This document shows positions 6-34,777 of a stretch of DNA of 64,000 bases, in pieces. Each line of letters opens with the position of its first letter. Positions within the stretch are counted from its first letter, which is position 1. The position numbers were made by a program, and so were the translations under genes. The DNA lies in sequence record NC_049849.1. One strand, written 5' to 3'. The notes beneath the pieces were generated by a model. It ran no database searches. It was not told the DNA's origin and was given only the letters and a program-made list of their open reading frames with translations.

Positions 6-1064
6 ATGCAAGCAAAGATTGAATCGGCTTCGATTCAGGATGCGCTCAAGACGGTTCTCCGTCTAGCGGCCCCGGCTTCCGGTAACATCACCCTCGACGT
101 ACAAGACAAAATCTATCTGCGGTCGTTCGGTGAGCTGAATCAGTGCCACGTCAAGCTGCCCGGTACGCCCAAAGGCAAGGCATCGTTTTCGATCCCTGCT
201 ACTACCCTGCAAGATGCAGTCAAGGGTCGCAAGGAAGTCAGCCTCGAGTTCAAGAATACCATGCTGAATATCACGGCTGGTTCTTACAAGGCTGACTTGG
301 CGACCGTTGACGCCATCATGCTCGAAGCTCCGCAATCCGAAGGCAAGCCGGAGGTCGTCAAGATTTCCGGCGAGCAAGCTCAGTGGCTGAAGCAAGCTGT
401 GACCGCAGTGAGTCTCAAGCCTAACGTTATCGTGTCGGCGTTCATGCCGTGCGGTATCAAGCTGACGAAGAAAGGCGCGTATGTCGCTTGTTTCGATTCG
501 ACCCACATGGCATTCATCAAGTCGAAGGAAATCACGGGTGACTGCGAATTCGTGCTGCCGTTGGACACGGTGCAAGCTGTGCTCGATATCTTCGCGCACT
601 CCGACTTCACGATGGAAATCTCGACTTCGAACATCCGCGTTAAGAACAAGGTCGCTCAGGTGATCTTGGCTGTGCCGGAACTCGATCAAGGTCTGCCGAA
701 GCTGACTCAGGTTATCTCGACCTCTGAGGAAGCGATCGCTGCGAAGGGCAAGTCGATTGAAGTACCGCGGCAAGACCTGCTTGCATTCCTCGACAACAGC
801 CGAGCGGTTGCAATCAAGGAACGCGCTGAGATTGAATGCTCGGCGAAGGAAACGAAAGTGCAGTTCGCAATGAAGACTGCGAACGGCAATACCAAGGTCA
901 CTCTGGACTGCAAGGCTAAGGCCGTGTCGTTCAAGGTTGACTTTGAACAGTTTGACGAAGTGGTCCGCAAGTCTGGCGACGCCGTTAGCATCCGCGTGGT
1001 GAATGGTGCTTTCCTTCTTGCTCAGACTCCCAAGACGGTAATGATCGTTGGTTTGAATCAGTAG
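6..1064 (+). CDS. dnaN: DNA polymerase sliding clamp (beta-clamp-like)
   Basis: 352 aa, the size of a beta clamp. Three-domain alternating beta/alpha pattern; 'GIKLTKKGAYVACFDSTHMAF' resembles the DnaN ATDGHRL segment; replication context. Confidence 0.65.
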   Translation: MQAKIESASIQDALKTVLRLAAPASGNITLDVQDKIYLRSFGELNQCHVKLPGTPKGKASFSIPATTLQDAVKGRKEVSLEFKNTMLNITAGSYKADLATVDAIMLEAPQSEGKPEVVKISGEQAQWLKQAVTAVSLKPNVIVSAFMPCGIKLTKKGAYVACFDSTHMAFIKSKEITGDCEFVLPLDTVQAVLDIFAHSDFTMEISTSNIRVKNKVAQVILAVPELDQGLPKLTQVISTSEEAIAAKGKSIEVPRQDLLAFLDNSRAVAIKERAEIECSAKETKVQFAMKTANGNTKVTLDCKAKAVSFKVDFEQFDEVVRKSGDAVSIRVVNGAFLLAQTPKTVMIVGLNQ

Positions 1065-16924: not shown

Positions 16925-16933
16925 TCGTAAATA
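16925..16933 (+). promoter_or_regulatory. TCGTAAATA motif (candidate phage promoter) upstream of the deazaguanine cluster
   Basis: One of 16 exact copies on the + strand; intergenic; followed by a hairpin (16935-16961) and the queD RBS. Confidence 0.6.
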
Positions 16934-16981: not shown

Positions 16982-17428
16982 ATGGTCTGGCAATCTACCA
17001 AAACGTACGGTCATGAAGTTGGACTGAGCTGCGCATTCCGACAATGGCGCGCTCACTCGCATTGCCGTTTCGTTCATGGGTACGCACTGGCATTCAAGTT
17101 CGTCTTCGAGACTGAAGAGCTGGACAGCACGAACTGGGCAGTGGACTTCGGCGGCCTCAAGTCGTTGAAGCAAATGCTGCAAGACACGTTTGACCACAAG
17201 ACTGTTGTTGCCGAAGACGATCCCGAACTCGAATGGTTCAAGGAAGCAGAGAAGCGTGGCATCCTCGAACTGGTGGTACTGCCGCATGGTGGCTGCGAGA
17301 AGTTTGCAGAGTTCACGTATGAAGCCGCTGAGCAGTGGCTCAAGGATGCGGGCTTCAGTCCTCGTTGCCGACTGGTCTCTGTTGAAGTCTCCGAGCACGG
17401 CGCCAACTCCGCAATCTTCAAGCGTTAA
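16982..17428 (+). CDS. queD: 6-carboxy-5,6,7,8-tetrahydropterin synthase
   Basis: HSHCRFVHGY, VDFGGLK, FDHKT; T-fold size; Que cluster context. Confidence 0.9.
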   Translation: MVWQSTKTYGHEVGLSCAFRQWRAHSHCRFVHGYALAFKFVFETEELDSTNWAVDFGGLKSLKQMLQDTFDHKTVVAEDDPELEWFKEAEKRGILELVVLPHGGCEKFAEFTYEAAEQWLKDAGFSPRCRLVSVEVSEHGANSAIFKR

Positions 17429-17430
17429 TT

Positions 17431-18033
17431 ATGAAACCAATCATTCTTCTGTACGGTGGTGGCATCGACTCGACTACGCTACTGGCGCACCTGTCTAAGC
17501 ACCGTCGAGTATATGCAATGTTCTTTGCCTACGGTCAGAAGGCCGAAGCGTTGGAGCGCGAAGCCTGCAAGTATTTCTGCGAACGCTACCACGCTGAGTT
17601 CGTTGAAGTCAAGCTGCCCATTTCGGAACTCGCGGACTCCGCGATCCTGAACGGCGGTGCTCTGGCTGACAATCCCGCTATCAACATTGTTGATGGTCGC
17701 AACCTGACGTTCATTACCTTGGCTTCGATGTTCGCGGCCAAGGTAGACGTGACTGAGATTGCTGTAGGCTTCCATGTTGAGCCGGTAGCGCGCCCCTTCC
17801 CGGATGCGAGCCCCGAGTTCCTGGATGCAGTTAACACGATGCTGCCGCAAGCCTTCGTACACAAAGCTCAAGTCGTTGCTCCTTTCAAGGACATGACCCG
17901 CGCTGAAATCTTCCGATACGCGGATTCGATGGACTCAGAAATTCTGGCCCAAGCACATACGTGCTATGAAGACGTACCCGGTGGTTGCGGCAAGTGCAGC
18001 CACTGCCTAATCAAAGCAGAACTAACGGAGTAA
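17431..18033 (+). CDS. queC: 7-cyano-7-deazaguanine synthase
   Basis: PP-loop GGGIDS, FAYGQ, VDGRN, YPD-like FPDAS, zinc cluster TCY...CGKCSHC. Confidence 0.88.
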   Translation: MKPIILLYGGGIDSTTLLAHLSKHRRVYAMFFAYGQKAEALEREACKYFCERYHAEFVEVKLPISELADSAILNGGALADNPAINIVDGRNLTFITLASMFAAKVDVTEIAVGFHVEPVARPFPDASPEFLDAVNTMLPQAFVHKAQVVAPFKDMTRAEIFRYADSMDSEILAQAHTCYEDVPGGCGKCSHCLIKAELTE

Positions 18034-18036
18034 TCC

Positions 18037-19317
18037 ATGTGTGGCATCATCCTCGCAGCCGGTCCCAAGTATCTGTCCGGCGGATACATGAGCACTCAAC
18101 TGAGCCATCGTGGTCCTGACGCAGACACCGCAGGCGTGAACGGCAACGTATTCATTGCGCATCGTCGCTTGGCTATCGTTGACACTACATCGCTGAATGC
18201 TCAACAGCCACGATTTAAAGCGCAGCAGTACGCTTGCGTTTTCAACGGCGAGCTTTTCAACTACAAGAAACTGACGTGTGGTTCCGAGATTGAGCTGATT
18301 TCGGAACTGCTGTATGCTGGGCACGATCTGAGTCAGATACTCAATGGCTACTACGCCGTCGCCATGCACGATATCTCCCGCAATCGCATCACCCTGGCTC
18401 GCGATATCTTTGGCGTCATGCCTTTGTTCTATGCGAAGTACGAGGGTTCCTTCTTTGTCGCGTCTGAGCGCAAGGCAATGTATGCGCTGGTTCCCGAAGA
18501 CAAGATCAAGCCGGTGCCTGCTAACACTCGCATCGACTACTGCTTGAAGACTCGAAAGCTCACGTTCACCAAGTACACGCAGCCTTGGACGTTCAATCTG
18601 CCGGGCGTCATCTACGGCCCGTACGAAAGCCACACGGCTCAAGTCTTTCTCAATGCAGTGCGCGAAGTTGCACAGCATAGCGATAACGGATTCTCGGTTG
18701 CTCTATCCGGCGGCCTGGATTCGTCGTTGGTTCTGGCAGCGTGCCGTGGCTTGGGTCTGACGCCCACCGCGATTCTCACGACGTACATTGCAGAGACCGA
18801 AACCGAAGAAATGCGCAGCGCCAAGGCTCTGGTCAAGCACTTCAAGTGGGAGCATCTGCATAAGCTCATCAAACTCGAAGAGCCCGACTACGACCTGCGA
18901 CACTGGATCGAAACGCCGCCGAATCCGATTCGTGATTTTGCGTATCGTCGTCATGCTGCAGTTGCCAAGCACAGTCCGAGCAAAGTGATCCTGTGCGGTG
19001 AAGGTGCTGATGAGCTAGGCCTCGGCTATCCTCTAAATGGCGAGTTCAATACCCCGCTCGCACGATACATGAAGAAGGTTTCGCTGTTGAAGTCTCAAGC
19101 TACAATGACGCTCGATCGCGTTAACACGGCTGGTATGCAGTACTCGAAAGAATATCGCGTGCCGTTCCTACATATCCCATTTGTGCAGCACGCGTTGACT
19201 GTCGACCAAGTCGGCAAGACGCACTTCCGCAAGATGGCAACGTATCTTGGGATTCCTGACGGCATCCTACCGAATAACAAATACTCCGATGAAGAACGCA
19301 TCGGTCGAGCCCAATGA
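18037..19317 (+). CDS. asparagine synthetase B-like glutamine amidotransferase
   Basis: N-terminal Ntn nucleophile MCGI, HRGPD, HRRLAIVD, FNGELFN, ARDIFG; PP-loop SGGLDSS; GEGADEL. Confidence 0.85.
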   Translation: MCGIILAAGPKYLSGGYMSTQLSHRGPDADTAGVNGNVFIAHRRLAIVDTTSLNAQQPRFKAQQYACVFNGELFNYKKLTCGSEIELISELLYAGHDLSQILNGYYAVAMHDISRNRITLARDIFGVMPLFYAKYEGSFFVASERKAMYALVPEDKIKPVPANTRIDYCLKTRKLTFTKYTQPWTFNLPGVIYGPYESHTAQVFLNAVREVAQHSDNGFSVALSGGLDSSLVLAACRGLGLTPTAILTTYIAETETEEMRSAKALVKHFKWEHLHKLIKLEEPDYDLRHWIETPPNPIRDFAYRRHAAVAKHSPSKVILCGEGADELGLGYPLNGEFNTPLARYMKKVSLLKSQATMTLDRVNTAGMQYSKEYRVPFLHIPFVQHALTVDQVGKTHFRKMATYLGIPDGILPNNKYSDEERIGRAQ

Positions 19318-20735
19318 AAAACAAGAAACAAGTAGCGACTGTCGAGCATGTTGGCTACGACTTGATGCCCGCCGCTGTAGACTTCTTTGATACTTTTGAG
19401 AGTGTCGGAGTCAAGTACGGCAACAACAAGCAGAGCAAGTGGTGGACTCGCGATCTGCGCGATGGTGTCCATGTCTTCTATCTGCCGGATCGTACGCTCT
19501 ACCGTGGACGTGCCGGAGCGACTCAGTCGTGCATTGCCAGTGTTGAAGTCGATGAGTTCCTTGAGTACTCGTTGCTGAGCAATCCCGAGCTGTACTCTAG
19601 CTGGGGCCTGCGCTACGCAATGATTAGCCCGCCACATATGGGGTTCAAGCCGGCTCCGGTACGCAATCCGCATATCCGTTTGTTCGCGGACTCGGGTGGC
19701 TTCCAGATTCGCCAAGGCGTCACCGACTTCATTGATCCCAATACTCTGGTCGACTTCTACAACAAGACGACTGACATTGGTATCGGCCTTGACGTTCCTA
19801 TGCACCCGTTGCTGTATCCGAAGATGCTGCAGCGCATGGCGCATGTTACCTGCATGAACGGCGAGTACATCAAGAAGCAACTGAACCCTGGCGTCATGCT
19901 GTACGATCTGAACCACGGCATGGACTTGGTCGACCGCAAGGCTTTCCTCGACGTGACCGAAAAGTACGAGCCGCTCGATGGTATCTCGCTGGCTGGTACG
20001 TCGAGCAATGCGCGTGGTGAGTACGGCGTGTCTGCGCACATCGTTAACGGCGTGGTTGGTATCGCATATGTCCTGGCTCGTTCTGCCAAGCGTTATCGCA
20101 CGGCTCACATCCTGGGCACCACGACTCCGTTCTATATGTTCGTGTTCAACGTCATGACTCGCGGCAAGTTCTTTCCGCATATCACATCTGATAGTTCGAC
20201 GTACGCGCAAGCGGCAATCATGAATACGCACTTGATGGGCATCCCCGGCATCAACATGCTGCGACGGAATCCGATGCCGAAGACTGATCTGTCGACTCTG
20301 CCATGCAGCTGCCCTATCTGCCACATGACGAAGTACACGCAGTCGTACGTAATCAACAATCGGTCAAACATGATTCACAGCATCTGGTACTACGTTCAGA
20401 TGATGCGCTACACGGAGCACTTGGCTGACGAGTTCCTGGCAGGCCGTACCAAGGACTTGGAAATCCTGAAGGTGCTCGGACCCTCGACGTTTAGCCCTGT
20501 CCACATGAAGGGTACGATGCGATTCCTACGCGACCTGATCGAGCACGGCTACAACAAGGCTTATGCGAACAGCAAGGACTTCATTCACTCGATGCTGGGT
20601 AAGAAGACCACGACCAATCTCTTTGGTGGCGAGCGTTCGGCTGGAGTCTTACACGGTGATGCCGAACGTACGGACCGCATTCTCACCAGCTACGAAACGT
20701 ACCATAAGAAGACCGGAGTGAAGAAGCGCAAATGA
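19314..20735 (+). CDS. TGT/DpdA-family guanine transglycosylase
   Basis: ADSGGFQ, LDVP, HILG, SDSSTY (nucleophilic Asp), zinc site CSCPIC...H; lies inside the Que cluster. Confidence 0.8.
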   Translation: MKNKKQVATVEHVGYDLMPAAVDFFDTFESVGVKYGNNKQSKWWTRDLRDGVHVFYLPDRTLYRGRAGATQSCIASVEVDEFLEYSLLSNPELYSSWGLRYAMISPPHMGFKPAPVRNPHIRLFADSGGFQIRQGVTDFIDPNTLVDFYNKTTDIGIGLDVPMHPLLYPKMLQRMAHVTCMNGEYIKKQLNPGVMLYDLNHGMDLVDRKAFLDVTEKYEPLDGISLAGTSSNARGEYGVSAHIVNGVVGIAYVLARSAKRYRTAHILGTTTPFYMFVFNVMTRGKFFPHITSDSSTYAQAAIMNTHLMGIPGINMLRRNPMPKTDLSTLPCSCPICHMTKYTQSYVINNRSNMIHSIWYYVQMMRYTEHLADEFLAGRTKDLEILKVLGPSTFSPVHMKGTMRFLRDLIEHGYNKAYANSKDFIHSMLGKKTTTNLFGGERSAGVLHGDAERTDRILTSYETYHKKTGVKKRK

Positions 20736-21337
20736 AAGTAGAAATCAAAACGTTTGAAAACGTGTGGGGCTGCGCTGTATTCAACGCCGAGCTGCATCGG
20801 AAGATGAAGCATCATCATTTGGTGGTCGGCGTCGATACGCTATTCAGTTCCAAATACAAGCCGGTCAAAGGCAAGACCACAATCGTCATCGACAACTTTG
20901 CACGTCTGCGCAGTAGCGGCGTTCCTATCATCGGGTACGAAAAGTCTCCGACGCAGACCTGGGTGAAAGTTAAAGCTAGCTGGAAGAAGCCGAAGCCCAA
21001 CAAGCCCGAGATTAAGAAGCCGGTGTATCTGGCAGGCGAACTCAAGGTGCTGCTCCCTACGGTTCCGCTGATGCTCGAGTATCAAGCCGCCGTGACCTTG
21101 GAGCAGATGGAAGCTCTGGCCGAGAAGTACAGAGCTGAAATCGACAAGCCTAAGAAAGGCTCACACAAGTGGTTGCGTCGTTCGGTCAACAGCACGCTCA
21201 AGGTCCTGGCGCCTGAGAAGTATGACCCCAAGTTTAAAGAGAAGGCCGCAGCTGCTCCTAAGTCCAAGCTTGGTGCCAAGGCGAAGAAAGCGAAAGACGT
21301 AAATACAGAAGTCGCTAAGAGGAAGGGCAAGAAATGA
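20732..21337 (+). CDS. hypothetical Lys-rich protein within the Que cluster
   Basis: Coupled ATGA overlaps on both sides. Confidence 0.6.
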   Translation: MKVEIKTFENVWGCAVFNAELHRKMKHHHLVVGVDTLFSSKYKPVKGKTTIVIDNFARLRSSGVPIIGYEKSPTQTWVKVKASWKKPKPNKPEIKKPVYLAGELKVLLPTVPLMLEYQAAVTLEQMEALAEKYRAEIDKPKKGSHKWLRRSVNSTLKVLAPEKYDPKFKEKAAAAPKSKLGAKAKKAKDVNTEVAKRKGKK

Positions 21338-22182
21338 AAGACGTGATTGTCATTCAAAACGTCGACCGAGTAATTCGACCTAAGGACTATGAAACCCTCG
21401 GCGAGAAGATTCGAGTAACGTCGATCTTCCGTACGATTCAAGGCGAAGGTCCGTATACCGGATATCCTTCGGTCTTCGTTCGACTGTCGGGCTGCAACTT
21501 CGGTAACAAGGCAGAGGACTCCGCGTGCCGTTGGTGTGATACAGCCTTCCAGTTCGATCAAGGCTATGATTACACGGCAGAAGAACTCCTGGCTGCAGTG
21601 CAGAATCAGCCTGACTTCCACGCCTCTGACGTTGTAGTCATCACTGGTGGTGAGCCGACGCTGCAACACAATCTGCTGAAGTTCATGAAGCTGTGCCATG
21701 AGAACGACCTGTCTATGCAGATTGAGACCAACGGCACACAGCCCTCGTTCTACCAGCAGATAGAAGAGCTTGATGAAGAAGGAACCCTGCCTTATACTTT
21801 TGTAGCGAAGGGTACAGGTGTCTTGCACGTCGTGAGTCCCAAAGCGATTTACAAGGCCGGCAAGATTCCGCAACCTAGTCAGCATGTCCTGAAGGCTACC
21901 GCGTGTCTCAAGTTCGTCGTGTCATCTGATCCTGAGAGCCCGCATCACGAAGTGCCCGAGTGGTCGCGTAGTGCCCGCAACAAGTTCCGAAGCATACCCG
22001 TGTATGTTTCGCCCATGGCCGTTTACAAGCGAGCGTACGCTGGTGAAGTCTCATCCATTTGGGACCGAGACCTCATCGACCAAGAGCGCACGGCAGCTAA
22101 CTACGCGTATGCTGCACAGTACGCGATGGCTAATGGTTTCCTGCTATCACTCCAAACTCACTTGTTCACGTCGATACCATGA
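21334..22182 (+). CDS. queE: 7-carboxy-7-deazaguanine synthase (radical SAM)
   Basis: IFRTIQGEG, VFVRLSGC, CX10CX2C cluster motif, VITGGEP, IETNGT, SPK, LSLQTH. Confidence 0.9.
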   Translation: MKDVIVIQNVDRVIRPKDYETLGEKIRVTSIFRTIQGEGPYTGYPSVFVRLSGCNFGNKAEDSACRWCDTAFQFDQGYDYTAEELLAAVQNQPDFHASDVVVITGGEPTLQHNLLKFMKLCHENDLSMQIETNGTQPSFYQQIEELDEEGTLPYTFVAKGTGVLHVVSPKAIYKAGKIPQPSQHVLKATACLKFVVSSDPESPHHEVPEWSRSARNKFRSIPVYVSPMAVYKRAYAGEVSSIWDRDLIDQERTAANYAYAAQYAMANGFLLSLQTHLFTSIP

Positions 22183-22538
22183 ACAACCCCAATCCCTCCG
22201 TTGACGATATATTGTACCTTCTTCGTCGTGGCATCAACGGCGAGGTTGCCGTCACTTACAAAGACTACCCCTTATTCAAGGGACCGAGCCAGTTCATAAC
22301 GTACTTCGGTAACTGCACTGTCGTGTTTTTCGATGACGGCGGCGGATGCCTGAAGTATGTAGAGAGCGCAAGCGACGCGCACGGCAACGTCGCTGTGTAC
22401 TCCGATTGGCACAACGCTTGGCTCGAAGCTAACAAAGACGAAGAAGACGATTGGTTCCGCGATCCCATCGAACTGCTGAGCGACGCTGAATACATTGAAC
22501 TGCTGGACGTGCTCCAGCGCGCAACAAAGAAGGACTGA
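22179..22538 (+). CDS. hypothetical protein
   Basis: Coupled 119-aa ORF. Confidence 0.55.
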   Translation: MNNPNPSVDDILYLLRRGINGEVAVTYKDYPLFKGPSQFITYFGNCTVVFFDDGGGCLKYVESASDAHGNVAVYSDWHNAWLEANKDEEDDWFRDPIELLSDAEYIELLDVLQRATKKD

Positions 22539-22540
22539 AC

Positions 22541-23200
22541 ATGACTTACACTACCGATCACAAGACTGGCCTCGACGTTCGAGCACATCTGATTGAGCAA
22601 GGCGTAGAGACGCCGTTCACTCCGAAGAAGATTGACCAGACGCGCTTGCAAGTTCTGTTTGCAGAGCTGCACCGCGAGGTCGGTCTCGACTTGGCAGACG
22701 ATTCGATCGCTGAGACTCCGCGCCGCCTGGCCAAGCTGTACTCCACGCAAGAGTACTTCCGCGGTCTCGACTACGCGAACTTCCCGAAGGCCACGGTCGT
22801 GGACAACAAGATGGGCTACGACGAAATGGTGGTTGAGCGCAACATCATCGTCAACAGCCTTTGTGAGCATCACTGGCTGCCCATCATTGGCGGCGCTTTC
22901 GTCGCGTACATTCCCGAGAAGAAAGTCATCGGTCTGTCGAAGCTCAATCGCCTCGTTGACTTCTTCTGCCGACGCCCGCAGATTCAAGAGCGCCTGGTAG
23001 AGCAAATCTATCACGCTCTGTCGTTCCTGCTGGAGACTAAGAACGTCGCAGTCGTGATTGAAGCAGAGCATATGTGCGTCAAGACGCGTGGCGTTGAAGA
23101 TGCGTGCTCTGACACCGTGACTTCGAAGCTCGGCGGCAAGTTCCGCGATCCCGCTCTGCGTGCTGAGTTCCTTACTCTTGCCAAAGGACTGCGTGGATGA
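22541..23200 (+). CDS. folE: GTP cyclohydrolase I
   Basis: ETPRRLAK, SLCEHHWLP, VIGLSKLNR, RRPQIQERL, EAEHMC. Confidence 0.95.
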   Translation: MTYTTDHKTGLDVRAHLIEQGVETPFTPKKIDQTRLQVLFAELHREVGLDLADDSIAETPRRLAKLYSTQEYFRGLDYANFPKATVVDNKMGYDEMVVERNIIVNSLCEHHWLPIIGGAFVAYIPEKKVIGLSKLNRLVDFFCRRPQIQERLVEQIYHALSFLLETKNVAVVIEAEHMCVKTRGVEDACSDTVTSKLGGKFRDPALRAEFLTLAKGLRG

Positions 23201-23442
23201 AACGCCGCGACGATTTAGATAAAGTAATCAAGACTCTTTGCGATGGAAACCGGAGATTCAGTTTCGCGTTCACTCGCAACGTTGCGCAGATTCGCGCAGG
23301 TCTTGATCTTGCAGAGGACAAGCGCCCACGCCCGGTAACGGATGAAGAGCTGCTTAACTCGGTGCTTGAGCTATCACTCGAAGCCTCTGCCTATCTCGCC
23401 GCACAAGGCTTCGTCTATTACGAAGGACACAACAGTGACTGA
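23197..23442 (+). CDS. hypothetical protein
   Basis: Coupled 81-aa ORF. Confidence 0.45.
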   Translation: MKRRDDLDKVIKTLCDGNRRFSFAFTRNVAQIRAGLDLAEDKRPRPVTDEELLNSVLELSLEASAYLAAQGFVYYEGHNSD

Positions 23443-23582
23443 TGAAATGCGGGGCACGTTGCTCCTGTGGGTATCCAATCGTGGCCGGGTGAAACAGCCA
23501 GTGCCTAAACCAGTCGTCTCGGAAGCCCTGTGGCGCCTAGCTTTCAGCGGACAAAATTTAATAGTCCAAGGAGGTACACACG

Positions 23583-24002
23583 ATGCTAACATTCCCGCAA
23601 ATCATCAAGCGCACCACGAAAGATCGAATCGCCAGCGCAAAGTACGTAAAGATTCTCAAGACCAAGTCCGGCTATGACCAGCTAGGTCGGGGGTACATTG
23701 CAGCGCAAACCATGAGCACTCACGAGTTCGATTACTCGACGGGTAAGTGGTATCCTGCAAAGAACAAACCGATGTATCTGACCAAGGCAGTCTTCTTTGA
23801 CAACAAGCTGCACTGCCTTGTGTCTTGCAGCTGCCCTGACTTCCCCTATCGCTGGGAGTATGCACTGACGGCAAAAGACGCATCGGAGATTGAGTACTCT
23901 GACGGTTCTGCTCCGAACATCACCAACCCCACGCTCAGGCCCGGCGCCTGCAAGCATCTGGTTCGCTTGTATCTGCGTATTCAAAACAAGCTCAAGAAAT
24001 GA
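23583..24002 (+). CDS. SWIM zinc-finger protein
   Basis: GGAGG RBS; CSCPDF...CKH motif. Confidence 0.7.
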   Translation: MLTFPQIIKRTTKDRIASAKYVKILKTKSGYDQLGRGYIAAQTMSTHEFDYSTGKWYPAKNKPMYLTKAVFFDNKLHCLVSCSCPDFPYRWEYALTAKDASEIEYSDGSAPNITNPTLRPGACKHLVRLYLRIQNKLKK

Positions 24003-24289
24003 CAGTCGATATCAAAAACCTCAAAGCCGCTATCAAGGGACTACCCACTGAGCAGACGGACGTTAACCCGGTCGAGTCCGGTACGACTGTTCACGCGATG
24101 AAGCCTGACTACGAGCGCCACAACAATCCGCCTCAGGAGCAGCAGCGCAAGTCGTCGGTCAACATTGGGTGGATCACGGGCGGCATCAACACTGCACCGC
24201 AGCACAATGCCTCCCAGTATCTCGGCAACCTCACTGAAGCCGACAAGGCCCACCAACGCCTAGTCGAACACTTGAAGAACAAACAGTAA
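23999..24289 (+). CDS. hypothetical protein
   Basis: Coupled 96-aa ORF. Confidence 0.5.
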   Translation: MTVDIKNLKAAIKGLPTEQTDVNPVESGTTVHAMKPDYERHNNPPQEQQRKSSVNIGWITGGINTAPQHNASQYLGNLTEADKAHQRLVEHLKNKQ

Positions 24290-24290
24290 C

Positions 24291-25253
24291 ATGGCTAAGT
24301 ATCAGCACTCCGAAACATTCAGGGCACTGAAGTCTACCAAGGAAGAAATCGAAGGCAATCTCACCAGTGCACAGTATCTACAGACGCTGGACTACTTTCT
24401 GTGGAGTGCGCTGAATCCCATCGCGGCGGAGTGTCCTGATTTCTTCTACTCGATGATCGCCAAGTTCGTGAGTCTGCAAACGACGAAACCGAATACGAAG
24501 TTCACGAGTGGGGACAAGAAGCAGCTGCCGCTCATCTTGTTCAATGCCTTGATAAACAAGAACGCAGAGAAGCGATTCGAGTCTATTAAAAAGATGTATT
24601 GGAATCGCGGGCTACTCTTTGGTCTGATCCTGACCTTTCAGAAGCTGACCAACGAGTACCAAGCTCTGCACTCAGTCTTCAACGATGTTGACTTGACCAC
24701 TCGAGTCAATCGTATGCGTCAGATTGAGAAATCAGTCGGCGCGAAGAACCCAGCGTATCTCTACGCAACGATTCAGCAAGTGGCCTACTGGGACTCGAAG
24801 GCTCGCTGGTTCAAGTCGTTGATCGTACAGAAGTTCACGCGTATGGCGATGCTGCAAGCACAGCAGACCTACAAGGACTTCGACCACAAGGTTCCGCTGG
24901 ATGATGTATCACACGTCTACATGATGGTAGTCAACAAAGCCATTGATCGCTGTAACTCCAACATGGGAGTGATCACGACCTTTGTTCAGAATTGGTTGCC
25001 TACGGCTCGAGCAATCGTGCAGCAGATGGCATCCAAGTCTACCGATGAGTCATGGGACGAGCTGGCAGAAACCCTGGGTGACAGTTTAGAGCTCGGTGCT
25101 ACAATGCCGAACACTGACTCTGAAACCCTGCAGCAAATCTCTTACCTCGCACGACTGGCCGATCCACAAGGCTTGGTGCGTACCCACTTGCAAATCCCTC
25201 AATGGGTAGCGGCCAAATACCGCGCCCGCCTTCTCAATCTTGCTAAAGAGTAA
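24291..25253 (+). CDS. divergent sigma70-family factor (RpoD-like non-conserved region + region 2, no region 4)
   Basis: RMRQIEKSVG...KARWFKSLIVQKFTRMAMLQA...LDDV...NKAIDR...MGVITTFVQNWL aligns by eye with RpoD KLQQIEEETG...KARRAKKEMVEANLRLVISIA...LDLI...MKAVDKF...GYKFSTYATWWI. Confidence 0.6.
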   Translation: MAKYQHSETFRALKSTKEEIEGNLTSAQYLQTLDYFLWSALNPIAAECPDFFYSMIAKFVSLQTTKPNTKFTSGDKKQLPLILFNALINKNAEKRFESIKKMYWNRGLLFGLILTFQKLTNEYQALHSVFNDVDLTTRVNRMRQIEKSVGAKNPAYLYATIQQVAYWDSKARWFKSLIVQKFTRMAMLQAQQTYKDFDHKVPLDDVSHVYMMVVNKAIDRCNSNMGVITTFVQNWLPTARAIVQQMASKSTDESWDELAETLGDSLELGATMPNTDSETLQQISYLARLADPQGLVRTHLQIPQWVAAKYRARLLNLAKE

Positions 25254-25254
25254 A

Positions 25255-25983
25255 ATGAAAAACATTCGTGAACTGTTGGCCCTGCAGTACGCTACCAATG
25301 ACAAGCTGGCCCCTGGCTGGCTCGAACGCTCGGACGTGGACTTCTATTCCGCGATCCGCGATGAAGCAGGTGAACTAGCTGTCTCCGCAGGTTGGAAGCC
25401 GTGGTGGTCGAAGGCTGAGTCGAAGCTGGACCGCGACAACTGCAAGGTCGAAGTCGTTGACCTGCTGCACTTCCATATGTCGGCAGTGCTGCGTGAATGC
25501 TTCGAGCAGGAAGGCGACGAGCTGGAAGACCTGAGCGATGAAGCGCTGAAGCGTGAACTCATCGAGTCGGCCGCCGACAATTTCGAGTACGCCAACTACT
25601 CGAGCATCAACCCGGATCGTACGGACGTTCAGGCTGTCAATGACTACCTGGGTGACGTGCTGTGCATGGGCGCTATCTCTTCGGTCCCTCAGTTGATGGC
25701 TCTGGCTGAACGCTTTGGCATGATTGAGGCTGAGTTCGGTCTGCGCTACATCGCAAAGAATGCACTCAACAACTTCCGCAAGGCTCACAACTACAAGGGC
25801 GATATCGAAGGCATGCCTGCGTATCGCAAGATGTGGTTCGACGGCCAACAGGAAGACAACTACTACGTGACCGCGTATCTGAACAAGCAAGTCGAGAACG
25901 GTAAGACTCCGACCTATCAGCAGTTCTATGACGCAATGGAAGCCATGTATGTCGGAAATTACGACCCTACTCAATTTGCTTGA
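25255..25983 (+). CDS. dimeric (all-alpha) dUTPase
   Basis: AIRDEAGEL, WKPWW, VEVVDLLHF, YIAKNALNNFR. Confidence 0.8.
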   Translation: MKNIRELLALQYATNDKLAPGWLERSDVDFYSAIRDEAGELAVSAGWKPWWSKAESKLDRDNCKVEVVDLLHFHMSAVLRECFEQEGDELEDLSDEALKRELIESAADNFEYANYSSINPDRTDVQAVNDYLGDVLCMGAISSVPQLMALAERFGMIEAEFGLRYIAKNALNNFRKAHNYKGDIEGMPAYRKMWFDGQQEDNYYVTAYLNKQVENGKTPTYQQFYDAMEAMYVGNYDPTQFA

Positions 25984-26269
25984 TCGGCAAGTCAACACTG
26001 ACTACGTTGAAGGCCTTGAGCGCGCAGTCCAGACCAGCGATGCAATCAGGGCTGCTGTAGCCGACGGCTTAGACGTTGCGCAAGTCATGACTCAACACCT
26101 CGCGCGGCACACGCAGCACAAGGCGCAGAGTCTGCAAGCTGTTATTGAGACAACCCTGCTTGCACTCCAAGCACTGCAGGGTCTTGATGACTCGAATCAG
26201 AAAATCGTAAATAAGATCGTCGATGCACTAACGACTTCTATTGGTGCATCCAAACTGAGGAATAACTAA
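25949..26269 (+). CDS. hypothetical protein
   Basis: Helical 106-aa ORF; start refined. Confidence 0.5.
   Translation: MSEITTLLNLLDRQVNTDYVEGLERAVQTSDAIRAAVADGLDVAQVMTQHLARHTQHKAQSLQAVIETTLLALQALQGLDDSNQKIVNKIVDALTTSIGASKLRNN
26205..26213 (+). promoter_or_regulatory. TCGTAAATA motif upstream of the SSB gene
   Basis: Exact motif about 57 nt before ATG 26270. Confidence 0.55.
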
Positions 26270-27784
26270 ATGGCAAAGCAGAAAGGTACTGACCTCGACG
26301 GTTACAAGTCGGGCCGCAGCAATGACGACCGCAAGCGTCCTGAAGATATCGTTGACGTACTGAAGGTACCCGACAACGGTGACAAGTGGACCACGGTTCG
26401 TATGATTGGCATCCTCGCCACGTACGCTGGCTACTGGGTCACGACGACGAAGAAGGACGGCAAGGAAGGCACGTTCTACACGCCCAGCCCTTCGTACGAT
26501 CCCGAGTCGCAAGAGTTCGACCGTTCCAAGTATGACCCGTGGCTCGACGCAGCGGATCGTTTGAACACGCAAGATCGCCGAGTCATCAGCCCGCGCCGTG
26601 TGGCATACTCGAACGTCATTGTGCGCGCTGAGCAAAAGAAGGCGCCGAAGAAGAAGCCGAAGCCGACCAAGGCCGAGTTGAAGTCGGGCTTCAAGGATAA
26701 GGAATCGGAAACCTGGACGCCGGTCCGCGTTATGGCGTTCCCTTCGTCGTTGATGAACAAGATCATCAAGTTCAAGAACGCCAACATGGTCGAGACCAAG
26801 AAAGGCGAGAAGGGCTACCATGTCAACGATCCGAAGTACGGCTGCGATATCCGTATCTCCTACGACTCGAAGGCTTCCGGTACTGACAAGTACTCGGTGT
26901 TGATGGCTGATCGCAAGCCCATCACCGAAGAAGAATCCGAATACCTGCTGTACGATATCTCCGAACTGCAAACGGTGCCGGACGAAGCAGAGGTGAAGCG
27001 CGACTTCGAATCGTGGGCCAAGCGTAACGGCATCAAGCTCGGCAAGAACAAGTCGAAGGATGATGACGACGAAGAAGACGATATCGACGAGGACGAAGAC
27101 GACCTCGATGATGACGACGAGCCGAAGTCGAAAAAGAAGGGCAAGGGCAAGGGCAAGGCCGACAAGAAGTCGAAGGGCAAGAAGAAGTCCAAGTCTGATG
27201 ACGACGAAGACGAAGACGAGGATGAAGATGACCTCGACGACGAAGACGACGAAGACGAGGATGACGACGAACCCAAGTCGAAAAAGAAGGGTAAAGGCAA
27301 GCCCGCCAAGTCCAAGAAGTCGAAGGATGATGATGATGACGACGAAGACGAGGATGAAGATGAAGATGAAGATGACGACGATGATTCGGATGACGATGAT
27401 GAGGATGACTCTGACTCGGATGATGAAGACGATGACGACGATGACTCGGATGATGACGAGGACGATGATGAAGATGAGGATGACGACGACGAGCCCAAGT
27501 CGAAGAAGTCCAAGTCTAAGTCGAAAGGTAAACCCGCCAAGGGTAAGAAGAAGTCCAAGTCTGATGATGATGACGAAGACGATGATGACCTAGACGACGA
27601 TGACTCCGATGATGAGGACGAAGACGACGACGAAGATGAGGACGATGAGCCCAAGTCGAAGAAGTCGAAGAAAGCCAAGTCGAAGAGTAAGGAAAAGTCC
27701 AGCAAGAAGGGCAAGAAGTCGAAGGGTAAGAAGAAGTCCAAGTCGGATGATGACGAAGACGAAGACGACGACATTCCTTTCTAA
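26270..27784 (+). CDS. single-stranded DNA-binding protein (T4 gp32-like core) with long charge-block tail ending DDDIPF
   Basis: Core motifs TTVRMIG, YSNVIVR, VMAFPSSLMNKI, NDPKYGCDI resemble gp32; the C-terminal DDDIPF is identical to the bacterial SSB tip; gene lies upstream of recA. Confidence 0.7.
   Translation: MAKQKGTDLDGYKSGRSNDDRKRPEDIVDVLKVPDNGDKWTTVRMIGILATYAGYWVTTTKKDGKEGTFYTPSPSYDPESQEFDRSKYDPWLDAADRLNTQDRRVISPRRVAYSNVIVRAEQKKAPKKKPKPTKAELKSGFKDKESETWTPVRVMAFPSSLMNKIIKFKNANMVETKKGEKGYHVNDPKYGCDIRISYDSKASGTDKYSVLMADRKPITEEESEYLLYDISELQTVPDEAEVKRDFESWAKRNGIKLGKNKSKDDDDEEDDIDEDEDDLDDDDEPKSKKKGKGKGKADKKSKGKKKSKSDDDEDEDEDEDDLDDEDDEDEDDDEPKSKKKGKGKPAKSKKSKDDDDDDEDEDEDEDEDDDDDSDDDDEDDSDSDDEDDDDDDSDDDEDDDEDEDDDDEPKSKKSKSKSKGKPAKGKKKSKSDDDDEDDDDLDDDDSDDEDEDDDEDEDDEPKSKKSKKAKSKSKEKSSKKGKKSKGKKKSKSDDDEDEDDDIPF
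27050..27781 (+). repeat. intragenic low-complexity repeat: alternating Asp/Glu and EPKSKK-led Lys blocks
   Basis: Four GA(G/A)CC(C/G)AAGTCGAA(A/G)AAG units separated by GAY/GAR runs. Confidence 0.85.
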
Positions 27785-27809
27785 GCAGTCGTAGGTAATC
27801 CATAACTCG

Positions 27810-27851
27810 AGGGAGCCCCTTTACTCAAGGGCGCTCCCTTCGTTCGTTTTC
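27810..27851 (+). terminator. rho-independent terminator
   Basis: AGGGAGC-CCCTT / AAGGG-C-GCTCCCT stem followed by a T-rich tail. Confidence 0.6.
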
Positions 27852-27865
27852 AGGAAAATTTTTGC

Positions 27866-29467
27866 ATGGCAAAGAAAGAGAAAGACGCAAAAGCAAAGAA
27901 GACCAAGGTCAAGGCTGACGACAAGGAACTGAAGAAAGCCAAGAAGGCGGTCAAGGCTGTGATTGACGACGCTGAGAAGAAAACCAAGAAAGCCCTGAAG
28001 GCTGCAAAGGCAAAGAAGTCGAAGTCGCGGTCCGATGATGACGAAGTAGATGACGACGGCGACGAAGCTTCTGGTGAAGCGGGGTTCGATCCCTACGCGC
28101 ATATGAACTCCGACCTGGATGAAATCGAACGCCAGGTACAAGTTACATCGGGTCTCGAAGAAGACGCATTCCCCATGTCCACGGGTCTGCTGATGAAAGA
28201 CTTGATGCTGGGTGGTGGCATTCGCCCCGGCATGTACACGACTGCAGGTGGCGAGCAATCGACCAAGACCACTTCGGTTATCAACGACTTCGCGGCTGCT
28301 ACCCTCGCTGGTGTGCCGATCAAGTCGTGGTGGGACTACGAAGGTTCGACGGTCAACAGCCATCCGTACGTTGAGTCGATCATGCGAGCCAACGGCATCA
28401 AGAAAACGGCGCGTGATTTGTTTGGTGTGCGTGACTCTGCTACTGGCAAGTACATCGTCACTCCGATTATCCGTTTCCAAACGGAGTCGATTCTCGAAAA
28501 GTTCTTTGACTACTTTCACGGTATGCTCAAGCGTCTGCCGAACAAGCGACTGCTGGCGGGCAAGTGGTGGTACATCTATGAGGACTCGAAAGAGAACCAG
28601 AAGAAGTACGGCGAGTTCGCTTCAAAGAAGATGCCCAAGATGTACGGCAAGGGCATCTACATTCCTGTACCGAACGACGATGGGTCGCTGCAAGCTGTGG
28701 TCGGCGTTGACTCGTATCCGGCAATGAATCCTCTGCTGAACGATGAGGACGAGGCCAACGAAGGTCTGGCTCTGAATGCCCGTCGATTCTCCAAGCTGCT
28801 GCCCCGCGTGAAGGGCCTGCTGGTACAAAAGCGCGTGGCACTCCTCGGCGTGAATCAGTTGCGTGATATCCCGATGGCTCGATACGGTCCGACTCAGATG
28901 GAACCCGGCGGCAAGGCTTTGCAGTTCAACTCGGACGTGCGCCTCTGGAATTCCAGCCGTGCCCTGTCTGGTGTGCCGTACGGCAATCCGAAGGGTGAAG
29001 GCAAATTTGAGTTTGAAGATTCGATCACCGGCGAAGGCAAAGATCGCTACCGCTACATTCATCAGAAGATGGTGAAGAATAAGCTGAGTCAGGAAATCCC
29101 CGAAGTGTGGTATCGCCTGTGGGTCGAAGACGTGAACGGCGAAGCGCAGGGGTATGACCCGGTGTGGGATACGATCTACTACTTGTTTGTCACGGGTCAG
29201 GTCTCGGGTAAGCGTCATGCCATGACGTTGAACTTGGAGAAGCTCGGCGCAGCCAAGAAGTCTACGAGCTGGAAGGAACTCAAGCTGTGGGTTCTCGGTA
29301 GCAAGGACGACAAGAAAAAGATCAGTGAGCGCTTGGGCTACAAGCCAATGGACCTTCGCAAGTTCTGCTTCTCGCAGATGAAGAAGGGCACGAGCAAGGA
29401 GTTGTACTTTGCCCAACAAAATAAAAACGCGAAAAACAAGGATTCATCCGACGATTCGGAAGACTGA
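27866..29467 (+). CDS. recA: RecA/UvsX-like recombinase with Lys-rich N-terminal extension
   Basis: STGLLMKDLMLGGGIRPG, variant P-loop GEQSTKTT, VGVDSYPAM, GVNQLR, PGGKALQFNSDVRL. Confidence 0.85.
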   Translation: MAKKEKDAKAKKTKVKADDKELKKAKKAVKAVIDDAEKKTKKALKAAKAKKSKSRSDDDEVDDDGDEASGEAGFDPYAHMNSDLDEIERQVQVTSGLEEDAFPMSTGLLMKDLMLGGGIRPGMYTTAGGEQSTKTTSVINDFAAATLAGVPIKSWWDYEGSTVNSHPYVESIMRANGIKKTARDLFGVRDSATGKYIVTPIIRFQTESILEKFFDYFHGMLKRLPNKRLLAGKWWYIYEDSKENQKKYGEFASKKMPKMYGKGIYIPVPNDDGSLQAVVGVDSYPAMNPLLNDEDEANEGLALNARRFSKLLPRVKGLLVQKRVALLGVNQLRDIPMARYGPTQMEPGGKALQFNSDVRLWNSSRALSGVPYGNPKGEGKFEFEDSITGEGKDRYRYIHQKMVKNKLSQEIPEVWYRLWVEDVNGEAQGYDPVWDTIYYLFVTGQVSGKRHAMTLNLEKLGAAKKSTSWKELKLWVLGSKDDKKKISERLGYKPMDLRKFCFSQMKKGTSKELYFAQQNKNAKNKDSSDDSED

Positions 29468-30110
29468 ATCCCGTGAGGTGAATCTTCACGAGTTGCTCTC
29501 GGAACCAGCTACTCTGGTATCGGAGTTCGAGCCCCTGCCAAAGAGAAAGGTGAAGCCGAGATTCAAATCGGCTTTCTTCTTTCGGCTGGGCGACAAACAC
29601 GATGCAGAGCGTAAGCGTAGGGCCGAACTGAAACCCGCAGTTATCCAAGTGGCTAACGAAGCTGTGGTGGTCAGGTCGGAGTCCTACAAAGACGAGCTGG
29701 GTCCGCGAGTAGACAATGAAGCGAGCTCGGTCAGAGAATTTCTTCTGACCGAGTTTGCGATCAAGAGTACAGCGGCGGATACAGGAATGCTGCAGGCTGT
29801 TGAGGTACTGAAGAATGTCTCCGGGTCCGAAGTAGAGGAATCTATTCAGCGTCGCTTTGAACAGCTACGGCACAAGGCGATGACGATTCGACTAGCTCGG
29901 TACCTGGCTGATCACTTCGGCCTTGAAGAGTCTGACGTTGACCTGCTGCTCGATGCAGTTACGCCCCCTAAGCCAGCGAATATCATATTCCCTAGCCTAT
30001 CAGAAGTAACGCCGGACTCTCCGGTCGGTGCAGCAAATGAAAAATCAAGATCAGCTACTAAGTCTGTTTCCAGGCCTGGTGCCAAGCGACTTCGTACCCC
30101 AGCAAAGTAA
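29409..30110 (+). CDS. hypothetical protein upstream of terL
   Basis: 233-aa ORF overlapping both neighbours; start uncertain. Confidence 0.45.
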   Translation: MPNKIKTRKTRIHPTIRKTESREVNLHELLSEPATLVSEFEPLPKRKVKPRFKSAFFFRLGDKHDAERKRRAELKPAVIQVANEAVVVRSESYKDELGPRVDNEASSVREFLLTEFAIKSTAADTGMLQAVEVLKNVSGSEVEESIQRRFEQLRHKAMTIRLARYLADHFGLEESDVDLLLDAVTPPKPANIIFPSLSEVTPDSPVGAANEKSRSATKSVSRPGAKRLRTPAK

Positions 30111-32145
30111 AAAGAAGAAAAAGAAGAAGCGCGACTTAACCGAGGCCGAACGCATCGCTGAAGAGGTTGCAGAAGCTCAAGCTAAAGCAAAAGCCTTTGA
30201 TGACGAGCATGGCACGGACTTCGATATCGTGAAGCTCATGGACGAGGCAGTCGACCCATTGACCGGCACCTTGCGTGACCTCAAGATCGACGACCGGGAC
30301 TTGCCAGTGGCTAAGAACTACTGGGACTGGAGCTTCAACTTCGTAGGCGGCTCGACGCAGCCTTGGTCGCGTCAGATGTGGGCAATGCTGAAGTTCTTCG
30401 GCGAGATATGCCCAGTCTGCTCTGACAAGAAATGGTTCCGTGATGTGATGAACGTGCCGAAGGATTACCCGAGCAAGGACCTGCCCGAGCGACTGGTCAT
30501 GCTTGAGTACGGCGTGTGCCCCAAATGCAAACGGCATCGTCGGCAGCTGATTAAGAAAGGCCGCATGAACGACTACACTGAGTACGTTGGCGTGTGGGGT
30601 CAGCGGTCAGGCAAATCCGTTACTGCAGTGAACGCGGCTGGATATCACGGCCATCGATTTCTCAAGTTCCCAAAGCTGCCGGGTCTCACTCCTGGTATGG
30701 CCGAGGCAACGAACTTGACTGCGACGTTTACGGCACCGACTGCAGGACAGGCTTCAGCCGTTCTGTGGGAACCGTTCCTGAACGTTGTAGAGGAGTGCAA
30801 GTGGTATCAAGACTACTTCAAACTCCTAGACCACTACGGCAACAAGTATGGCATCGAGCTATACGCAAAGAAGAAAGAGTTCATCAAGTTCTTCAATAAG
30901 AAGATTCACTTTCAGCTTGCGAGTCCGAACAAGACTACACTCCGGGGTGCTACACGTATCCTAGGTTTGATCGACGAGCTGGGCCTGTTTCGCATTCCTG
31001 ATTCAGAGGACGGCGAAGACGACAAGGAACGCGCCAACGCTGACGAAGCACACAAGTCGCTAACCAACTCGTTGCTGACGATGCAGAACTCATACAAAGA
31101 ACTGTTGAGCCGTGGATTCTTCCATTGCCCTAACGGTTTGATGATGAGCGTTTCATCGCCCTTCAGTGACCGAGACAAGGTCATGCGGCTGCTGGCTGAA
31201 GCAGAAGGCGACATTGGTTCGAAGCTCATCTTTGGTACGCAGCTTGCGACGTGGGAAGTCAACCCGAACATTGAGAAGACTGACCCCATCATTGCTCTGG
31301 CCTACGAGAAGAATCCCGATAAGGCCGACCGTGACTTTGGTGCACGGCCACCGCGCATTGAGTCTCCGTTCATTCACGTTAACACTGTGAAAGAGGGAAT
31401 CTTCGTCGGCACGAAGAACACGCACGAACTCGAGCATGCCATTCAAGGCGGCAAGCTTTACGGTACGTTGCGTCGTGTGGCGAATACGGGTGCTGCTACT
31501 CTAATGTCTCTGGACGCTGGCGAAGTCAACAACTCATTCTCTATGACGTTGTTTACGCTGGACACCAAGACGATGAAGCCTGCGCTTCAGACTCTGGTCG
31601 AGGTAATGCCGCGTGAGGGATATCGCATCGACCACAACCTGGTGTACGAGAACATCATTCTGCCGCTGGCTAAAGAATGCAACTCGCACGTCATCATTGC
31701 GGACCGATGGAACTCGCTAGATATCCTGAGCCGGCTGACTGCTGACTTGACCTGGGACCCTATCGTGCAACAGATTACGCCGCGTCGTAAGGACTTCGAT
31801 GCAGTGCGCACAATGCTAGAGAACGACGGTATCACATGCCCGTTGCCAGAGATTCCATTGCACTCGTTCATCAACAAGTCGGTGGAAGACTATCGGCAGT
31901 TTTTCGTAAATAAGCCGATAGCACATTTGGCGCATCAGATGACGACGATTCGAGACGACGGACCCGGCAAGTGCCCAGTCAAAGGCCACCGATATACCGA
32001 CGACTCGTTCCGTGCATTCGCGCTAGGTGCGGCACGCATTCACACTCCCAAGTTTGTGGAGAAGCTGCAAAAGGCAATGACCTTAAAGAGTCGAGGCCCG
32101 ATGCCCGCAGCAGTCTACATATCAAGAGGCGGAATTCGCAGGTGA
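30028..32145 (+). CDS. terL: terminase large subunit
   Basis: Walker A WGQRSGKS, Walker B GLIDELG, SVSSP coupling motif, RNase H-like nuclease SLDAG...ADRWN...DDSF; N-terminal CPVC...CPKC. The start may be 30037. Confidence 0.82.
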   Translation: MQQMKNQDQLLSLFPGLVPSDFVPQQSKKKKKKKRDLTEAERIAEEVAEAQAKAKAFDDEHGTDFDIVKLMDEAVDPLTGTLRDLKIDDRDLPVAKNYWDWSFNFVGGSTQPWSRQMWAMLKFFGEICPVCSDKKWFRDVMNVPKDYPSKDLPERLVMLEYGVCPKCKRHRRQLIKKGRMNDYTEYVGVWGQRSGKSVTAVNAAGYHGHRFLKFPKLPGLTPGMAEATNLTATFTAPTAGQASAVLWEPFLNVVEECKWYQDYFKLLDHYGNKYGIELYAKKKEFIKFFNKKIHFQLASPNKTTLRGATRILGLIDELGLFRIPDSEDGEDDKERANADEAHKSLTNSLLTMQNSYKELLSRGFFHCPNGLMMSVSSPFSDRDKVMRLLAEAEGDIGSKLIFGTQLATWEVNPNIEKTDPIIALAYEKNPDKADRDFGARPPRIESPFIHVNTVKEGIFVGTKNTHELEHAIQGGKLYGTLRRVANTGAATLMSLDAGEVNNSFSMTLFTLDTKTMKPALQTLVEVMPREGYRIDHNLVYENIILPLAKECNSHVIIADRWNSLDILSRLTADLTWDPIVQQITPRRKDFDAVRTMLENDGITCPLPEIPLHSFINKSVEDYRQFFVNKPIAHLAHQMTTIRDDGPGKCPVKGHRYTDDSFRAFALGAARIHTPKFVEKLQKAMTLKSRGPMPAAVYISRGGIRR

Positions 32146-34433: not shown

Positions 34434-34444
34434 GAGCAGTACTC

Positions 34445-34460
34445 GAGGGCTCCGGCCCTC
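34445..34460 (+). repeat. GAGGGC-TCCG-GCCCTC hairpin, copy 1
   Basis: Identical 16-mer at 34762. Confidence 0.75.
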
Positions 34461-34491
34461 GTTTGCAAATGTTCGATAAGGAAAAATCGAA

Positions 34492-34749: not shown

Positions 34750-34761
34750 TACGCAGTGACC

Positions 34762-34777
34762 GAGGGCTCCGGCCCTC
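34762..34777 (+). repeat. GAGGGC-TCCG-GCCCTC hairpin, copy 2
   Basis: Identical to 34445; followed by a T-run. Confidence 0.75.

Follow-up and report, generated by a model that had tools for sequence, protein, structure and literature searches.

Introduction

Phage-encoded sigma factors are the main route by which phages without an RNA polymerase (RNAP) of their own reprogramme host transcription. Phage T4 gp55 demonstrates that a sigma factor reduced to region 2 can work, and it is, to our knowledge, the only well-studied sigma factor that operates without regions 3 and 4. Here we describe gp034, a sigma-70-family protein of 320 residues encoded by the jumbo myovirus Achromobacter phage Motura (genome 221,431 bp), in which a region 2 resembling that of RpoD is kept while regions 3 and 4 are not recognisable by sequence. 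The gene lies at 24291..25253 (+ strand, stop codon included) in the stretch analysed, bases 1-64000 of the genome, which we call the window.

The closest described system is gene 118 of phage PaBG, identified as a sigma-70 factor by HHpred (99.9%), with relatives restricted to the PaBG group and phiRSL1-like phages (Evseev et al., PMC7412058). Motura has been placed in a jumbo-phage group whose members all encode sigma factors (Iyer et al., PMC7824862), and a 2026 review states in general terms that sigma factors are encoded throughout that group (PMC13282480). phiRSL1, a relative of Motura, has no RNAP and is blocked by rifampicin (PMC5468394). We found no comment in these accounts on the absence of regions 3 and 4 or on three further features described below: the match to the RpoD non-conserved region, the C-terminal module with its conserved sequence and the SWIM partner gene.

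The sigma-factor identity of gp034 is thus already known from annotation and literature. The original prediction, made from the DNA letters, had the identity right and missed both the existing sigma annotation and the published family. What is new is the shortened build, a modestly novel architectural variant within a known sigma family.

Results

Gene identity and family

gp034 is an ATG-started open reading frame (ORF) whose product is identical to Motura YP_009903623, named "RNA polymerase sigma factor" in RefSeq. It matches PHROG 17569, which carries the same name, with E 6e-56 (residues 20-308 on profile positions 3-325 of 341). Positions 20000-32000 of the window are identical to the GenBank and RefSeq records, and the window agrees with the beginning of the Motura genome as reconstructed from the record. 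GenBank MN094788 names the protein "DNA-directed RNA polymerase subunit alpha", which is wrong, as the evidence does not support it; the same name is carried by BFVD/UniProt. gp034 is the sole annotated sigma factor in the Motura genome, and there are no RNAP subunit genes among the Motura annotations. Since Motura encodes no RNAP, gp034 most likely binds host core RNAP.

Database searches returned 64 close homologues and, at E <= 1e-3, a family of 279 representative clusters, nearly all with 300-360 residues and matching end to end. A fixed build of about 320 residues is conserved across these clusters. Through intermediate sequences the searches connect gp034 with the PaBG sigma factor, with Lu11, Dickeya and Erwinia phage proteins, and with others.

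Region 2 and predicted fold

Searches with the single gp034 sequence found nothing in Pfam or the PDB, and family profiles were needed. Two were used, an alignment of 40 homologues (A1) and an alignment and profile of 118 family members (A2), and they were compared with an alignment of 81 gamma- and beta-proteobacterial RpoD sequences. A1 was too shallow, giving FliA at E 0.67 in the PDB and, in hhalign, E 0.012 against the RpoD alignment. Against the single E. coli RpoD sequence, A1 aligned residues 125-239 with RpoD 329-438 (E 3.8e-4), reproducing the register of a match to RpoD that had been drawn by eye in the original prediction; that match is real, and the peptide strings quoted for it are all present in the gp034 translation.

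With A2, the best match in the PDB was E. coli RpoD (E 1.7e-8), followed by SigA of other phyla (1e-5 to 6e-4), FliA (1.9e-4) and RpoS (1.6e-3). When A2 was aligned with the 81 RpoD sequences by hhalign, residues 111-243 corresponded to RpoD 314-442 at 95% probability (E 3.6e-8), and region 2 alone (residues 173-245) corresponded to RpoD 374-445 at 96% probability (E 2.1e-9). The Pfam family Sigma70_r2 (PF04542) was matched by 86 of the 118 members, with a best E of 2.6e-8. Judged by these profile comparisons, the resemblance of gp034 to E. coli RpoD is beyond chance, and gp034 is a sigma-70-family protein in which the sequence signature of region 2 is present.

Region 2 (2.1-2.4) covers residues 173-252 (24807..25046; window coordinates written with two dots are on the + strand). 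In region 2.2, gp034 has KAIDRC where RpoD has KAVDKF, and D205 aligns with RpoD D403, a residue used on the beta-prime clamp helices. The glutamine corresponding to RpoD Q406 is kept family-wide, with Motura gp034 itself having H208 at this position. In E. coli, the region 2.3 aromatics Y430, W433 and W434 start melting of the -10 element. Of these, Y430 corresponds to F231 of gp034, a position held by F or Y throughout the family, and W434 corresponds to W235, which is invariant in the family; W433 has no aromatic counterpart, the residue there being N234.

A model of gp034 generated by AlphaFold2 on A1 is all-helical, with a mean predicted local distance difference test score (pLDDT) of 86.5, a long helix at residues 154-196 and one low-confidence stretch at 255-271. 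In a Foldseek search of the PDB with the whole model, the top 50 matches were all RpoD chains (probability ~1.0, best E 1.7e-3, query TM-score (TMq) 0.41-0.50). The top 50 include RpoD chains of just 278-307 residues, which we take to hold only sigma 1.2, the non-conserved region and sigma 2. A sigma-2 helical fold is accordingly what the model predicts for gp034.

N-terminal part

The resemblance to RpoD continues upstream of region 2. Residues 111-172 (24621..24806) are helical; hhalign and hmmsearch match them to RpoD 314-373, the last stretch of the non-conserved region, and they lead into region 2.1. Matches to proteobacterial RpoD begin at profile position 111-116 (RpoD 314-315), and matches to SigA proteins without the large insertion begin at region 2.1 (position 174-175). 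The best local alignment of the flank pairs residues 111-152 with RpoD 314-354 at an offset of 202, versus 201 for the independent alignment of region 2; the two therefore lie on the same diagonal, which is unlikely to arise by chance. From these alignments, homology of the last ~60 residues before region 2.1 to the non-conserved region appears probable.

Residues 1-110 (24291..24620) form a conserved, family-specific helical region in which pLDDT exceeds 90 from residue 30 on and Y4, H6, S7, F10, K14, E18, L30, L33, N105, R106 and G107 are invariant. This segment has no sequence match to any RpoD region (hhalign against RpoD 1-320, E 0.2-0.4). Region 1.2, sought by hhalign in residues 1-60, was not found (E 0.16), and there is no region 1.1 in gp034. 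A separate model of residues 1-172 (pLDDT 87.3) had E. coli sigma-70 chains as its only targets with TMq > 0.25 (0.46-0.56); against Thermus and mycobacterial SigA, TMq was ~0.18. For residues 1-110, the resemblance to sigma-70 is thus at the level of the predicted fold only.

The proposal that gp034 retains the non-conserved region therefore holds in part: the last ~60 residues align weakly (E 0.015) on the same diagonal as region 2, and residues 1-110 offer fold resemblance only. The same is true of derivation from RpoD. Region 2 and the best structure matches point to primary sigma factors, and the apparent homology of the last ~60 residues of the 170-residue helical N-terminal domain to the end of the non-conserved region suggests descent from one of them, so that alignments and models together lend this descent partial support.

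Candidate promoters

Two compact motif classes, GTAAATA and AATTTnATA, both without a -35 element and both conserved in the family's genomes, fit a sigma factor without region 4 as judged from their sequences, and either class is a candidate target of gp034.

TCGTAAATA is the most over-represented 9-mer in the Motura genome. Of its 31 sites in the genome, 29 are on the + strand; the structural module (112-194 kb) contains only 2. The window holds 16, all on the + strand, versus 0.15 expected. One of these (26205..26213) precedes the SSB gene by 57 nt, and the remaining 15 begin at 3977, 9419, 11542, 11923, 16925, 31904, 40349, 42042, 42513, 43012, 44357, 44437, 47876, 50265 and 63475. The copy nearest upstream of the sigma gene (16925..16933) is in the intergenic gap before a block of 7-deazaguanine genes. 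Sites often stand directly behind the stop codon of the upstream gene, with 4-760 nt to the next start. Across the 31 sites, information is confined to the 9-mer and the three A/T-rich positions that precede it, and no -35-like element was seen.

In each of 38 related loci, the GTAAATA core is present in 1-6 copies on the gene strand and is rare on the other strand; its usual position is 20-100 nt ahead of the SSB and RecA genes. The AAAACTGTAAATA element of Lu11 belongs to the same motif class as AAA-TCGTAAATA of Motura. Elements of the AAAACTGTAAATA type are labelled "putative middle/late promoter" in the Lu11 GenBank record (961-976, 1039-1054 and 7181-7196 in our Lu11 locus, L127). Residues of region 2.4 tend to covary with the bases that directly precede GTAAATA, with exceptions in two loci (L030 and L032); this trend is confounded by phylogeny and was not used. 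In the window, an overlapping TCGTAAATA tandem (AAATCGTAAATCGTAAATA) follows the topoisomerase gene (50255-50273), two copies stand 80 nt apart in one intergenic region (44357-44445), and the copy at 42513 is 20 nt upstream of a tRNA-Arg gene.

The second class, AATTT[ACT]ATA, has 16 sites genome-wide, always in gene orientation, versus none for six permuted control 9-mers. Fourteen of the 16 have a Shine-Dalgarno sequence and an ORF behind them, usually 19-46 nt downstream. The genes concerned are sheath-region, virion or structural, tail and lysis genes, together with gp032, the first gene of the operon that comprises the SWIM-like gene, gp033 and the sigma gene. There the element is AATTTAATA (23555..23563), 19 nt upstream of the gp032 start, and in most relatives AATTTnAT occupies the corresponding position before the SWIM-sigma pair. 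Elsewhere in the genome, sites are at 105856, 116607, 122062, 123754, 131254, 154542, 168200, 189622, 193511 and 206603, among others; the element before the sheath-region gene at ~116.6 kb is AATTTCATA. AATTT[ACT]ATA could be a late promoter or an RNA-level element.

The distribution of the two motifs bears directly on the alternative that fares best. gp034 might be the sigma factor for AATTTnATA, serving the late structural genes and, by positive autoregulation, its own operon, with TCGTAAATA read otherwise, for example by host sigma-70 holoenzyme altered by another phage protein. We regard this as possible, if somewhat doubtful. The 16 sites against empty controls, the Shine-Dalgarno sequences and genes that follow and the conservation upstream of the SWIM-sigma operon all speak for it, as do the near absence of TCGTAAATA from the structural module (2/31) and the finding that TCGTAAATA is sometimes just 4-9 nt from a start codon. 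Phage-encoded sigma factors, moreover, classically drive late genes, as in T4 and SPO1. Against it, GTAAATA is conserved as widely as the sigma factor itself and shares TAAATA with the T4 late promoter, which is read by a region-2-only sigma factor; a sigma gene is usually expressed from a promoter class earlier than the one its product reads; and AATTTnATA, always being just upstream of a Shine-Dalgarno sequence, could be an RNA-level or translational element. The suggestion that gp034 is the best candidate reader of TCGTAAATA consequently needs qualification: the motif is real, conserved and free of a -35 element, but AATTTnATA, found ahead of structural genes and of the sigma operon itself, has just as strong a claim.

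C-terminal part

Only 68 residues follow region 2.4 in gp034. The first part is an acidic linker (residues 253-275, 25047..25115) modelled with low confidence (pLDDT < 50 at 255-258 and 264-271), with S254 and E260 as conserved positions. It is followed by a conserved module of three predicted helices (residues 276-320, 25116..25250) with the family consensus A-K-x-A-D-P-x-G-x-A-R-x-x-L-G-I-x-E-x-L, in which D291, G294, R297, L300 and I302 are conserved at 78-95% across the 118 sequences. The extreme C-terminus is variable, some members having no last helix, and only L314 is well conserved there. Sequence conservation of this order makes the module too conserved to be a mere tail, and it is not a recognisable region 3 or 4.

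Neither Sigma70_r3 nor Sigma70_r4 was among the families listed in the Pfam scan of the 118 members, in which any unlisted family matched at most 1 member, and no sigma or helix-turn-helix (HTH) family was found when the C-terminal pieces of 10 diverse members were scanned alone (Pfam, E <= 10). In hhalign, residues 245-320 or 270-320 gave E 0.012-0.054 and a probability of at most 3.5% against three RpoD pieces (443-530, E 0.054; 443-613, best E 0.024; 530-613, E 0.012, probability 3.5%). A C-terminal module profile from 28 phages (A4) found chance kinase matches only in the PDB. A reading of the L-G-I-P pattern as region 4 or an HTH was thus tested three ways, by hhalign, Pfam and PDB profile search, and was not supported. 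These searches, which bear out the earlier statement that region 4 is lacking, support the conclusion that no region 3 or region 4 is recognisable in the gp034 sequence.

The module does invite a different interpretation, that gp034 is a complete two-part sigma factor in disguise, with residues 276-320 as a region 4 cut down to a minimum, still able to grip the tip of the beta flap and perhaps to contact upstream DNA, such as the A-tract beside the motif. Strong conservation of D291, G294, R297, L300 and I302 and the arrangement of three short predicted helices behind a flexible linker, like a tethered sigma-4, are in keeping with this idea. So are the best, though non-significant, hhalign match within RpoD 443-613, which falls on region 4.1 (E 0.012-0.024), a weak HTH_WhiA match in one homologue (E 0.013), and the information carried by the three A/T positions directly 5' of TCGTAAATA. 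We nevertheless consider it unlikely, since Sigma70_r4 and HTH families were found neither in the 10 C-terminal pieces, nor among the families listed for the 118 members, nor in the PDB profile search; since 45 residues are too short for regions 4.1 and 4.2 together; and since there is no -35-like conservation 15-50 bp upstream of TCGTAAATA.

A third possibility, that gp034 is no initiation factor at all and is instead a sigma-derived decoy that sits in the sigma-2 site of the host core enzyme and turns host transcription off, would account for the loss of regions 3 and 4, which normal sigma factors need, and for region 2.2, the core-binding motif, being the best-conserved part, but it is highly improbable given that the melting and -10-recognition part (regions 2.3-2.4, with F/Y231 and invariant W235) is as conserved as the core-binding part, that compact, conserved, strand-biased phage motifs unlike sigma-70 promoters need a reader, and that T4 gp55 exemplifies a working region-2-only sigma factor.

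Neighbouring genes

The order SWIM-like protein, sigma, SSB, RecA/UvsX, gp039, large terminase is kept in 35-38 related viral contigs, and PaBG keeps sigma-SSB-RecA. gp032 (23583..24002) encodes a small protein of unknown function (PHROG 18980) with a SWIM-like C-x-C...C-x-H zinc motif. Of 38 related loci, 35 have a gene of this type directly before the sigma gene, with the motif kept in the relatives, and gp032 stands out as a candidate cofactor or regulator of the sigma factor. Between it and the sigma gene, Motura alone has gp033 (23999..24289, 96 residues), for which no homologue was found in the 38 related loci and no family match was obtained.

The window also contains gp001 (6..1064), a DnaN-type sliding clamp according to RefSeq and PHROG 947 (processivity factor, E 1e-20). 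The clamp gene on which the original prediction had drawn therefore exists. Activation of gp034 by the clamp did not fare as well: the C-terminal tail has no conserved clamp-binding motif, and nothing links gp001 to gp034. A DnaN-type clamp-binding motif suggested by the R-Q-x-L-L-x-F endings of close relatives was rejected, as it is not conserved in the wider family.

The second putative sigma factor of PaBG (gene 112) and its neighbours have no BLAST match in Motura. No gp33-like or sigma-4-like ORF emerged from a crude scan of Motura six-frame ORFs with hidden Markov models derived from RpoD regions 1.2, 2, 3 and 4, a scan insensitive enough to miss region 2 of gp034 itself. Its single region 4 match, to gp228, was marginal (E 0.068), lacked backing from Pfam and PHROGs and was set aside.

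Other features of the surroundings were recorded. The gp037 SSB gene (26270-27784) encodes a C-terminal half of ~240 residues composed of alternating poly-Asp/Glu and Lys-rich K-S-K-K-G-K blocks; this tail is far longer than the usual acidic tails of SSB proteins, and the opposite strand acquires long spurious ORFs. Positions 16982-23200 hold genes for 7-deazaguanine (queuosine-type) synthesis and insertion, namely QueD, QueC, an asparagine-synthetase-like protein, a TGT/DpdA-like transglycosylase, QueE and GTP cyclohydrolase I. This block implies modified guanines in the phage DNA, and such modification could affect promoter recognition at G-containing motifs such as TCGTAAATA. At 27805-27850, 34440-34465 and 34760-34785, intergenic GC-rich hairpins share a repeated core (CTCGAGGG...CCCTC) and have T-rich runs behind them; they look like a reused terminator element.

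Discussion

Taken together, the alignments and the structural model make it likely that gp034 is the phage's own sigma-70-family initiation factor, one that would bind host core RNAP and read phage promoters without a -35 element. Core binding would occur through region 2, by way of the KAIDRC core-binding motif; F231 and W235 would nucleate -10 melting; and the protein would direct RNAP to short phage promoters, either of the GTAAATA class (AAA-TCGTAAATA in Motura, at non-structural genes) or of the AATTTnATA class (at structural genes and the sigma operon). We infer core binding, promoter class and timing alike.

Several observations weigh against this interpretation or parts of it. Motura gp034, taken alone, stays under all Pfam thresholds. 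Residues 100-172 alone, compared with RpoD 128-373, reach E 0.015 (range 0.015-0.1), which is not significant, and the Foldseek E-values of the N-terminal domain are at least 0.35. Sequence methods may also have overlooked a diverged region 4, or an element that binds the flap, in the C-terminal module. Finally, the sigma operon is preceded by AATTTAATA and not by TCGTAAATA.

A broader scenario can be put forward tentatively, although we think it rather less probable than otherwise. A lineage of jumbo phages without RNAP (phiRSL1, Motura, Sauron, PaBG, Lu11 and hundreds of metagenomic relatives) may owe its sigma factor to a primary sigma of proteobacteria that lost regions 3 and 4 and came to read compact promoters without a -35 element, independently of the origin of T4 gp55, with the SWIM-like neighbour, the C-terminal module or both acting as a gp33-like flap-binding co-activator. 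If true, this would provide a second, unrelated and widespread family of reduced sigma factors from which the minimal needs for promoter melting and core RNAP retention could be learned. Such a family would combine ancestry in RpoD with a compact, defined promoter motif and a partner gene that is conserved alongside it; it would also offer a way into the timing of gene expression in a jumbo-phage lineage that is poorly understood.

Among known systems, the sigma factor of PaBG, Lu11 and phiRSL1 (PHROG 17569; PaBG gene 118, "RpoD subfamily RNA polymerase sigma-70 subunit") belongs to the same family as gp034 and has in common with it the length class of ~310-340 residues and the gene order sigma-SSB-RecA. 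The PaBG/Lu11 branch has only ~20-29% identity to Motura gp034 and is missed by direct BLAST from gp034. The SWIM-like upstream partner is confined to the phiRSL1/Motura/Sauron branch.

RpoD, the proteobacterial group 1 sigma factor with a large non-conserved region, aligns convincingly with gp034 over regions 2.1-2.4, and the alignment extends ~60 residues upstream (RpoD 314-373) for the proteobacterial type only. On E. coli sigma-70, the whole gp034 model and the N-terminal model both superpose at a TM-score of ~0.5. RpoD has 613 residues to the 320 of gp034, which is without region 1.1, a detectable region 1.2 and regions 3 and 4.

T4 gp55, with its co-activator gp33 and clamp gp45, differs from gp034 in several respects. 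The family profile has no sequence homology to gp55 in hhalign (E 0.12, over 27 columns in the linker). gp034 is almost twice as long as gp55 and has a large N-terminal domain; gp55 has a clamp-binding C-terminal tail, and no conserved one was seen in the gp034 family; T4 has gp33, and no gp33-like partner was identified in Motura; and the Motura clamp is DnaN-type whereas that of T4 is gp45-type. The description of gp034 as a gp55-like solution is therefore plausible as regards the analogous architecture and a motif without a -35 element, and does not extend to sequence homology. By analogy, gp034, like gp55, appears to be a phage sigma factor reduced essentially to region 2 function at promoters without a -35 element, and TCGTAAATA and the T4 late promoter TATAAATA share TAAATA. 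A likeness of architecture and function, as opposed to descent, is the plausible relationship between the two proteins.

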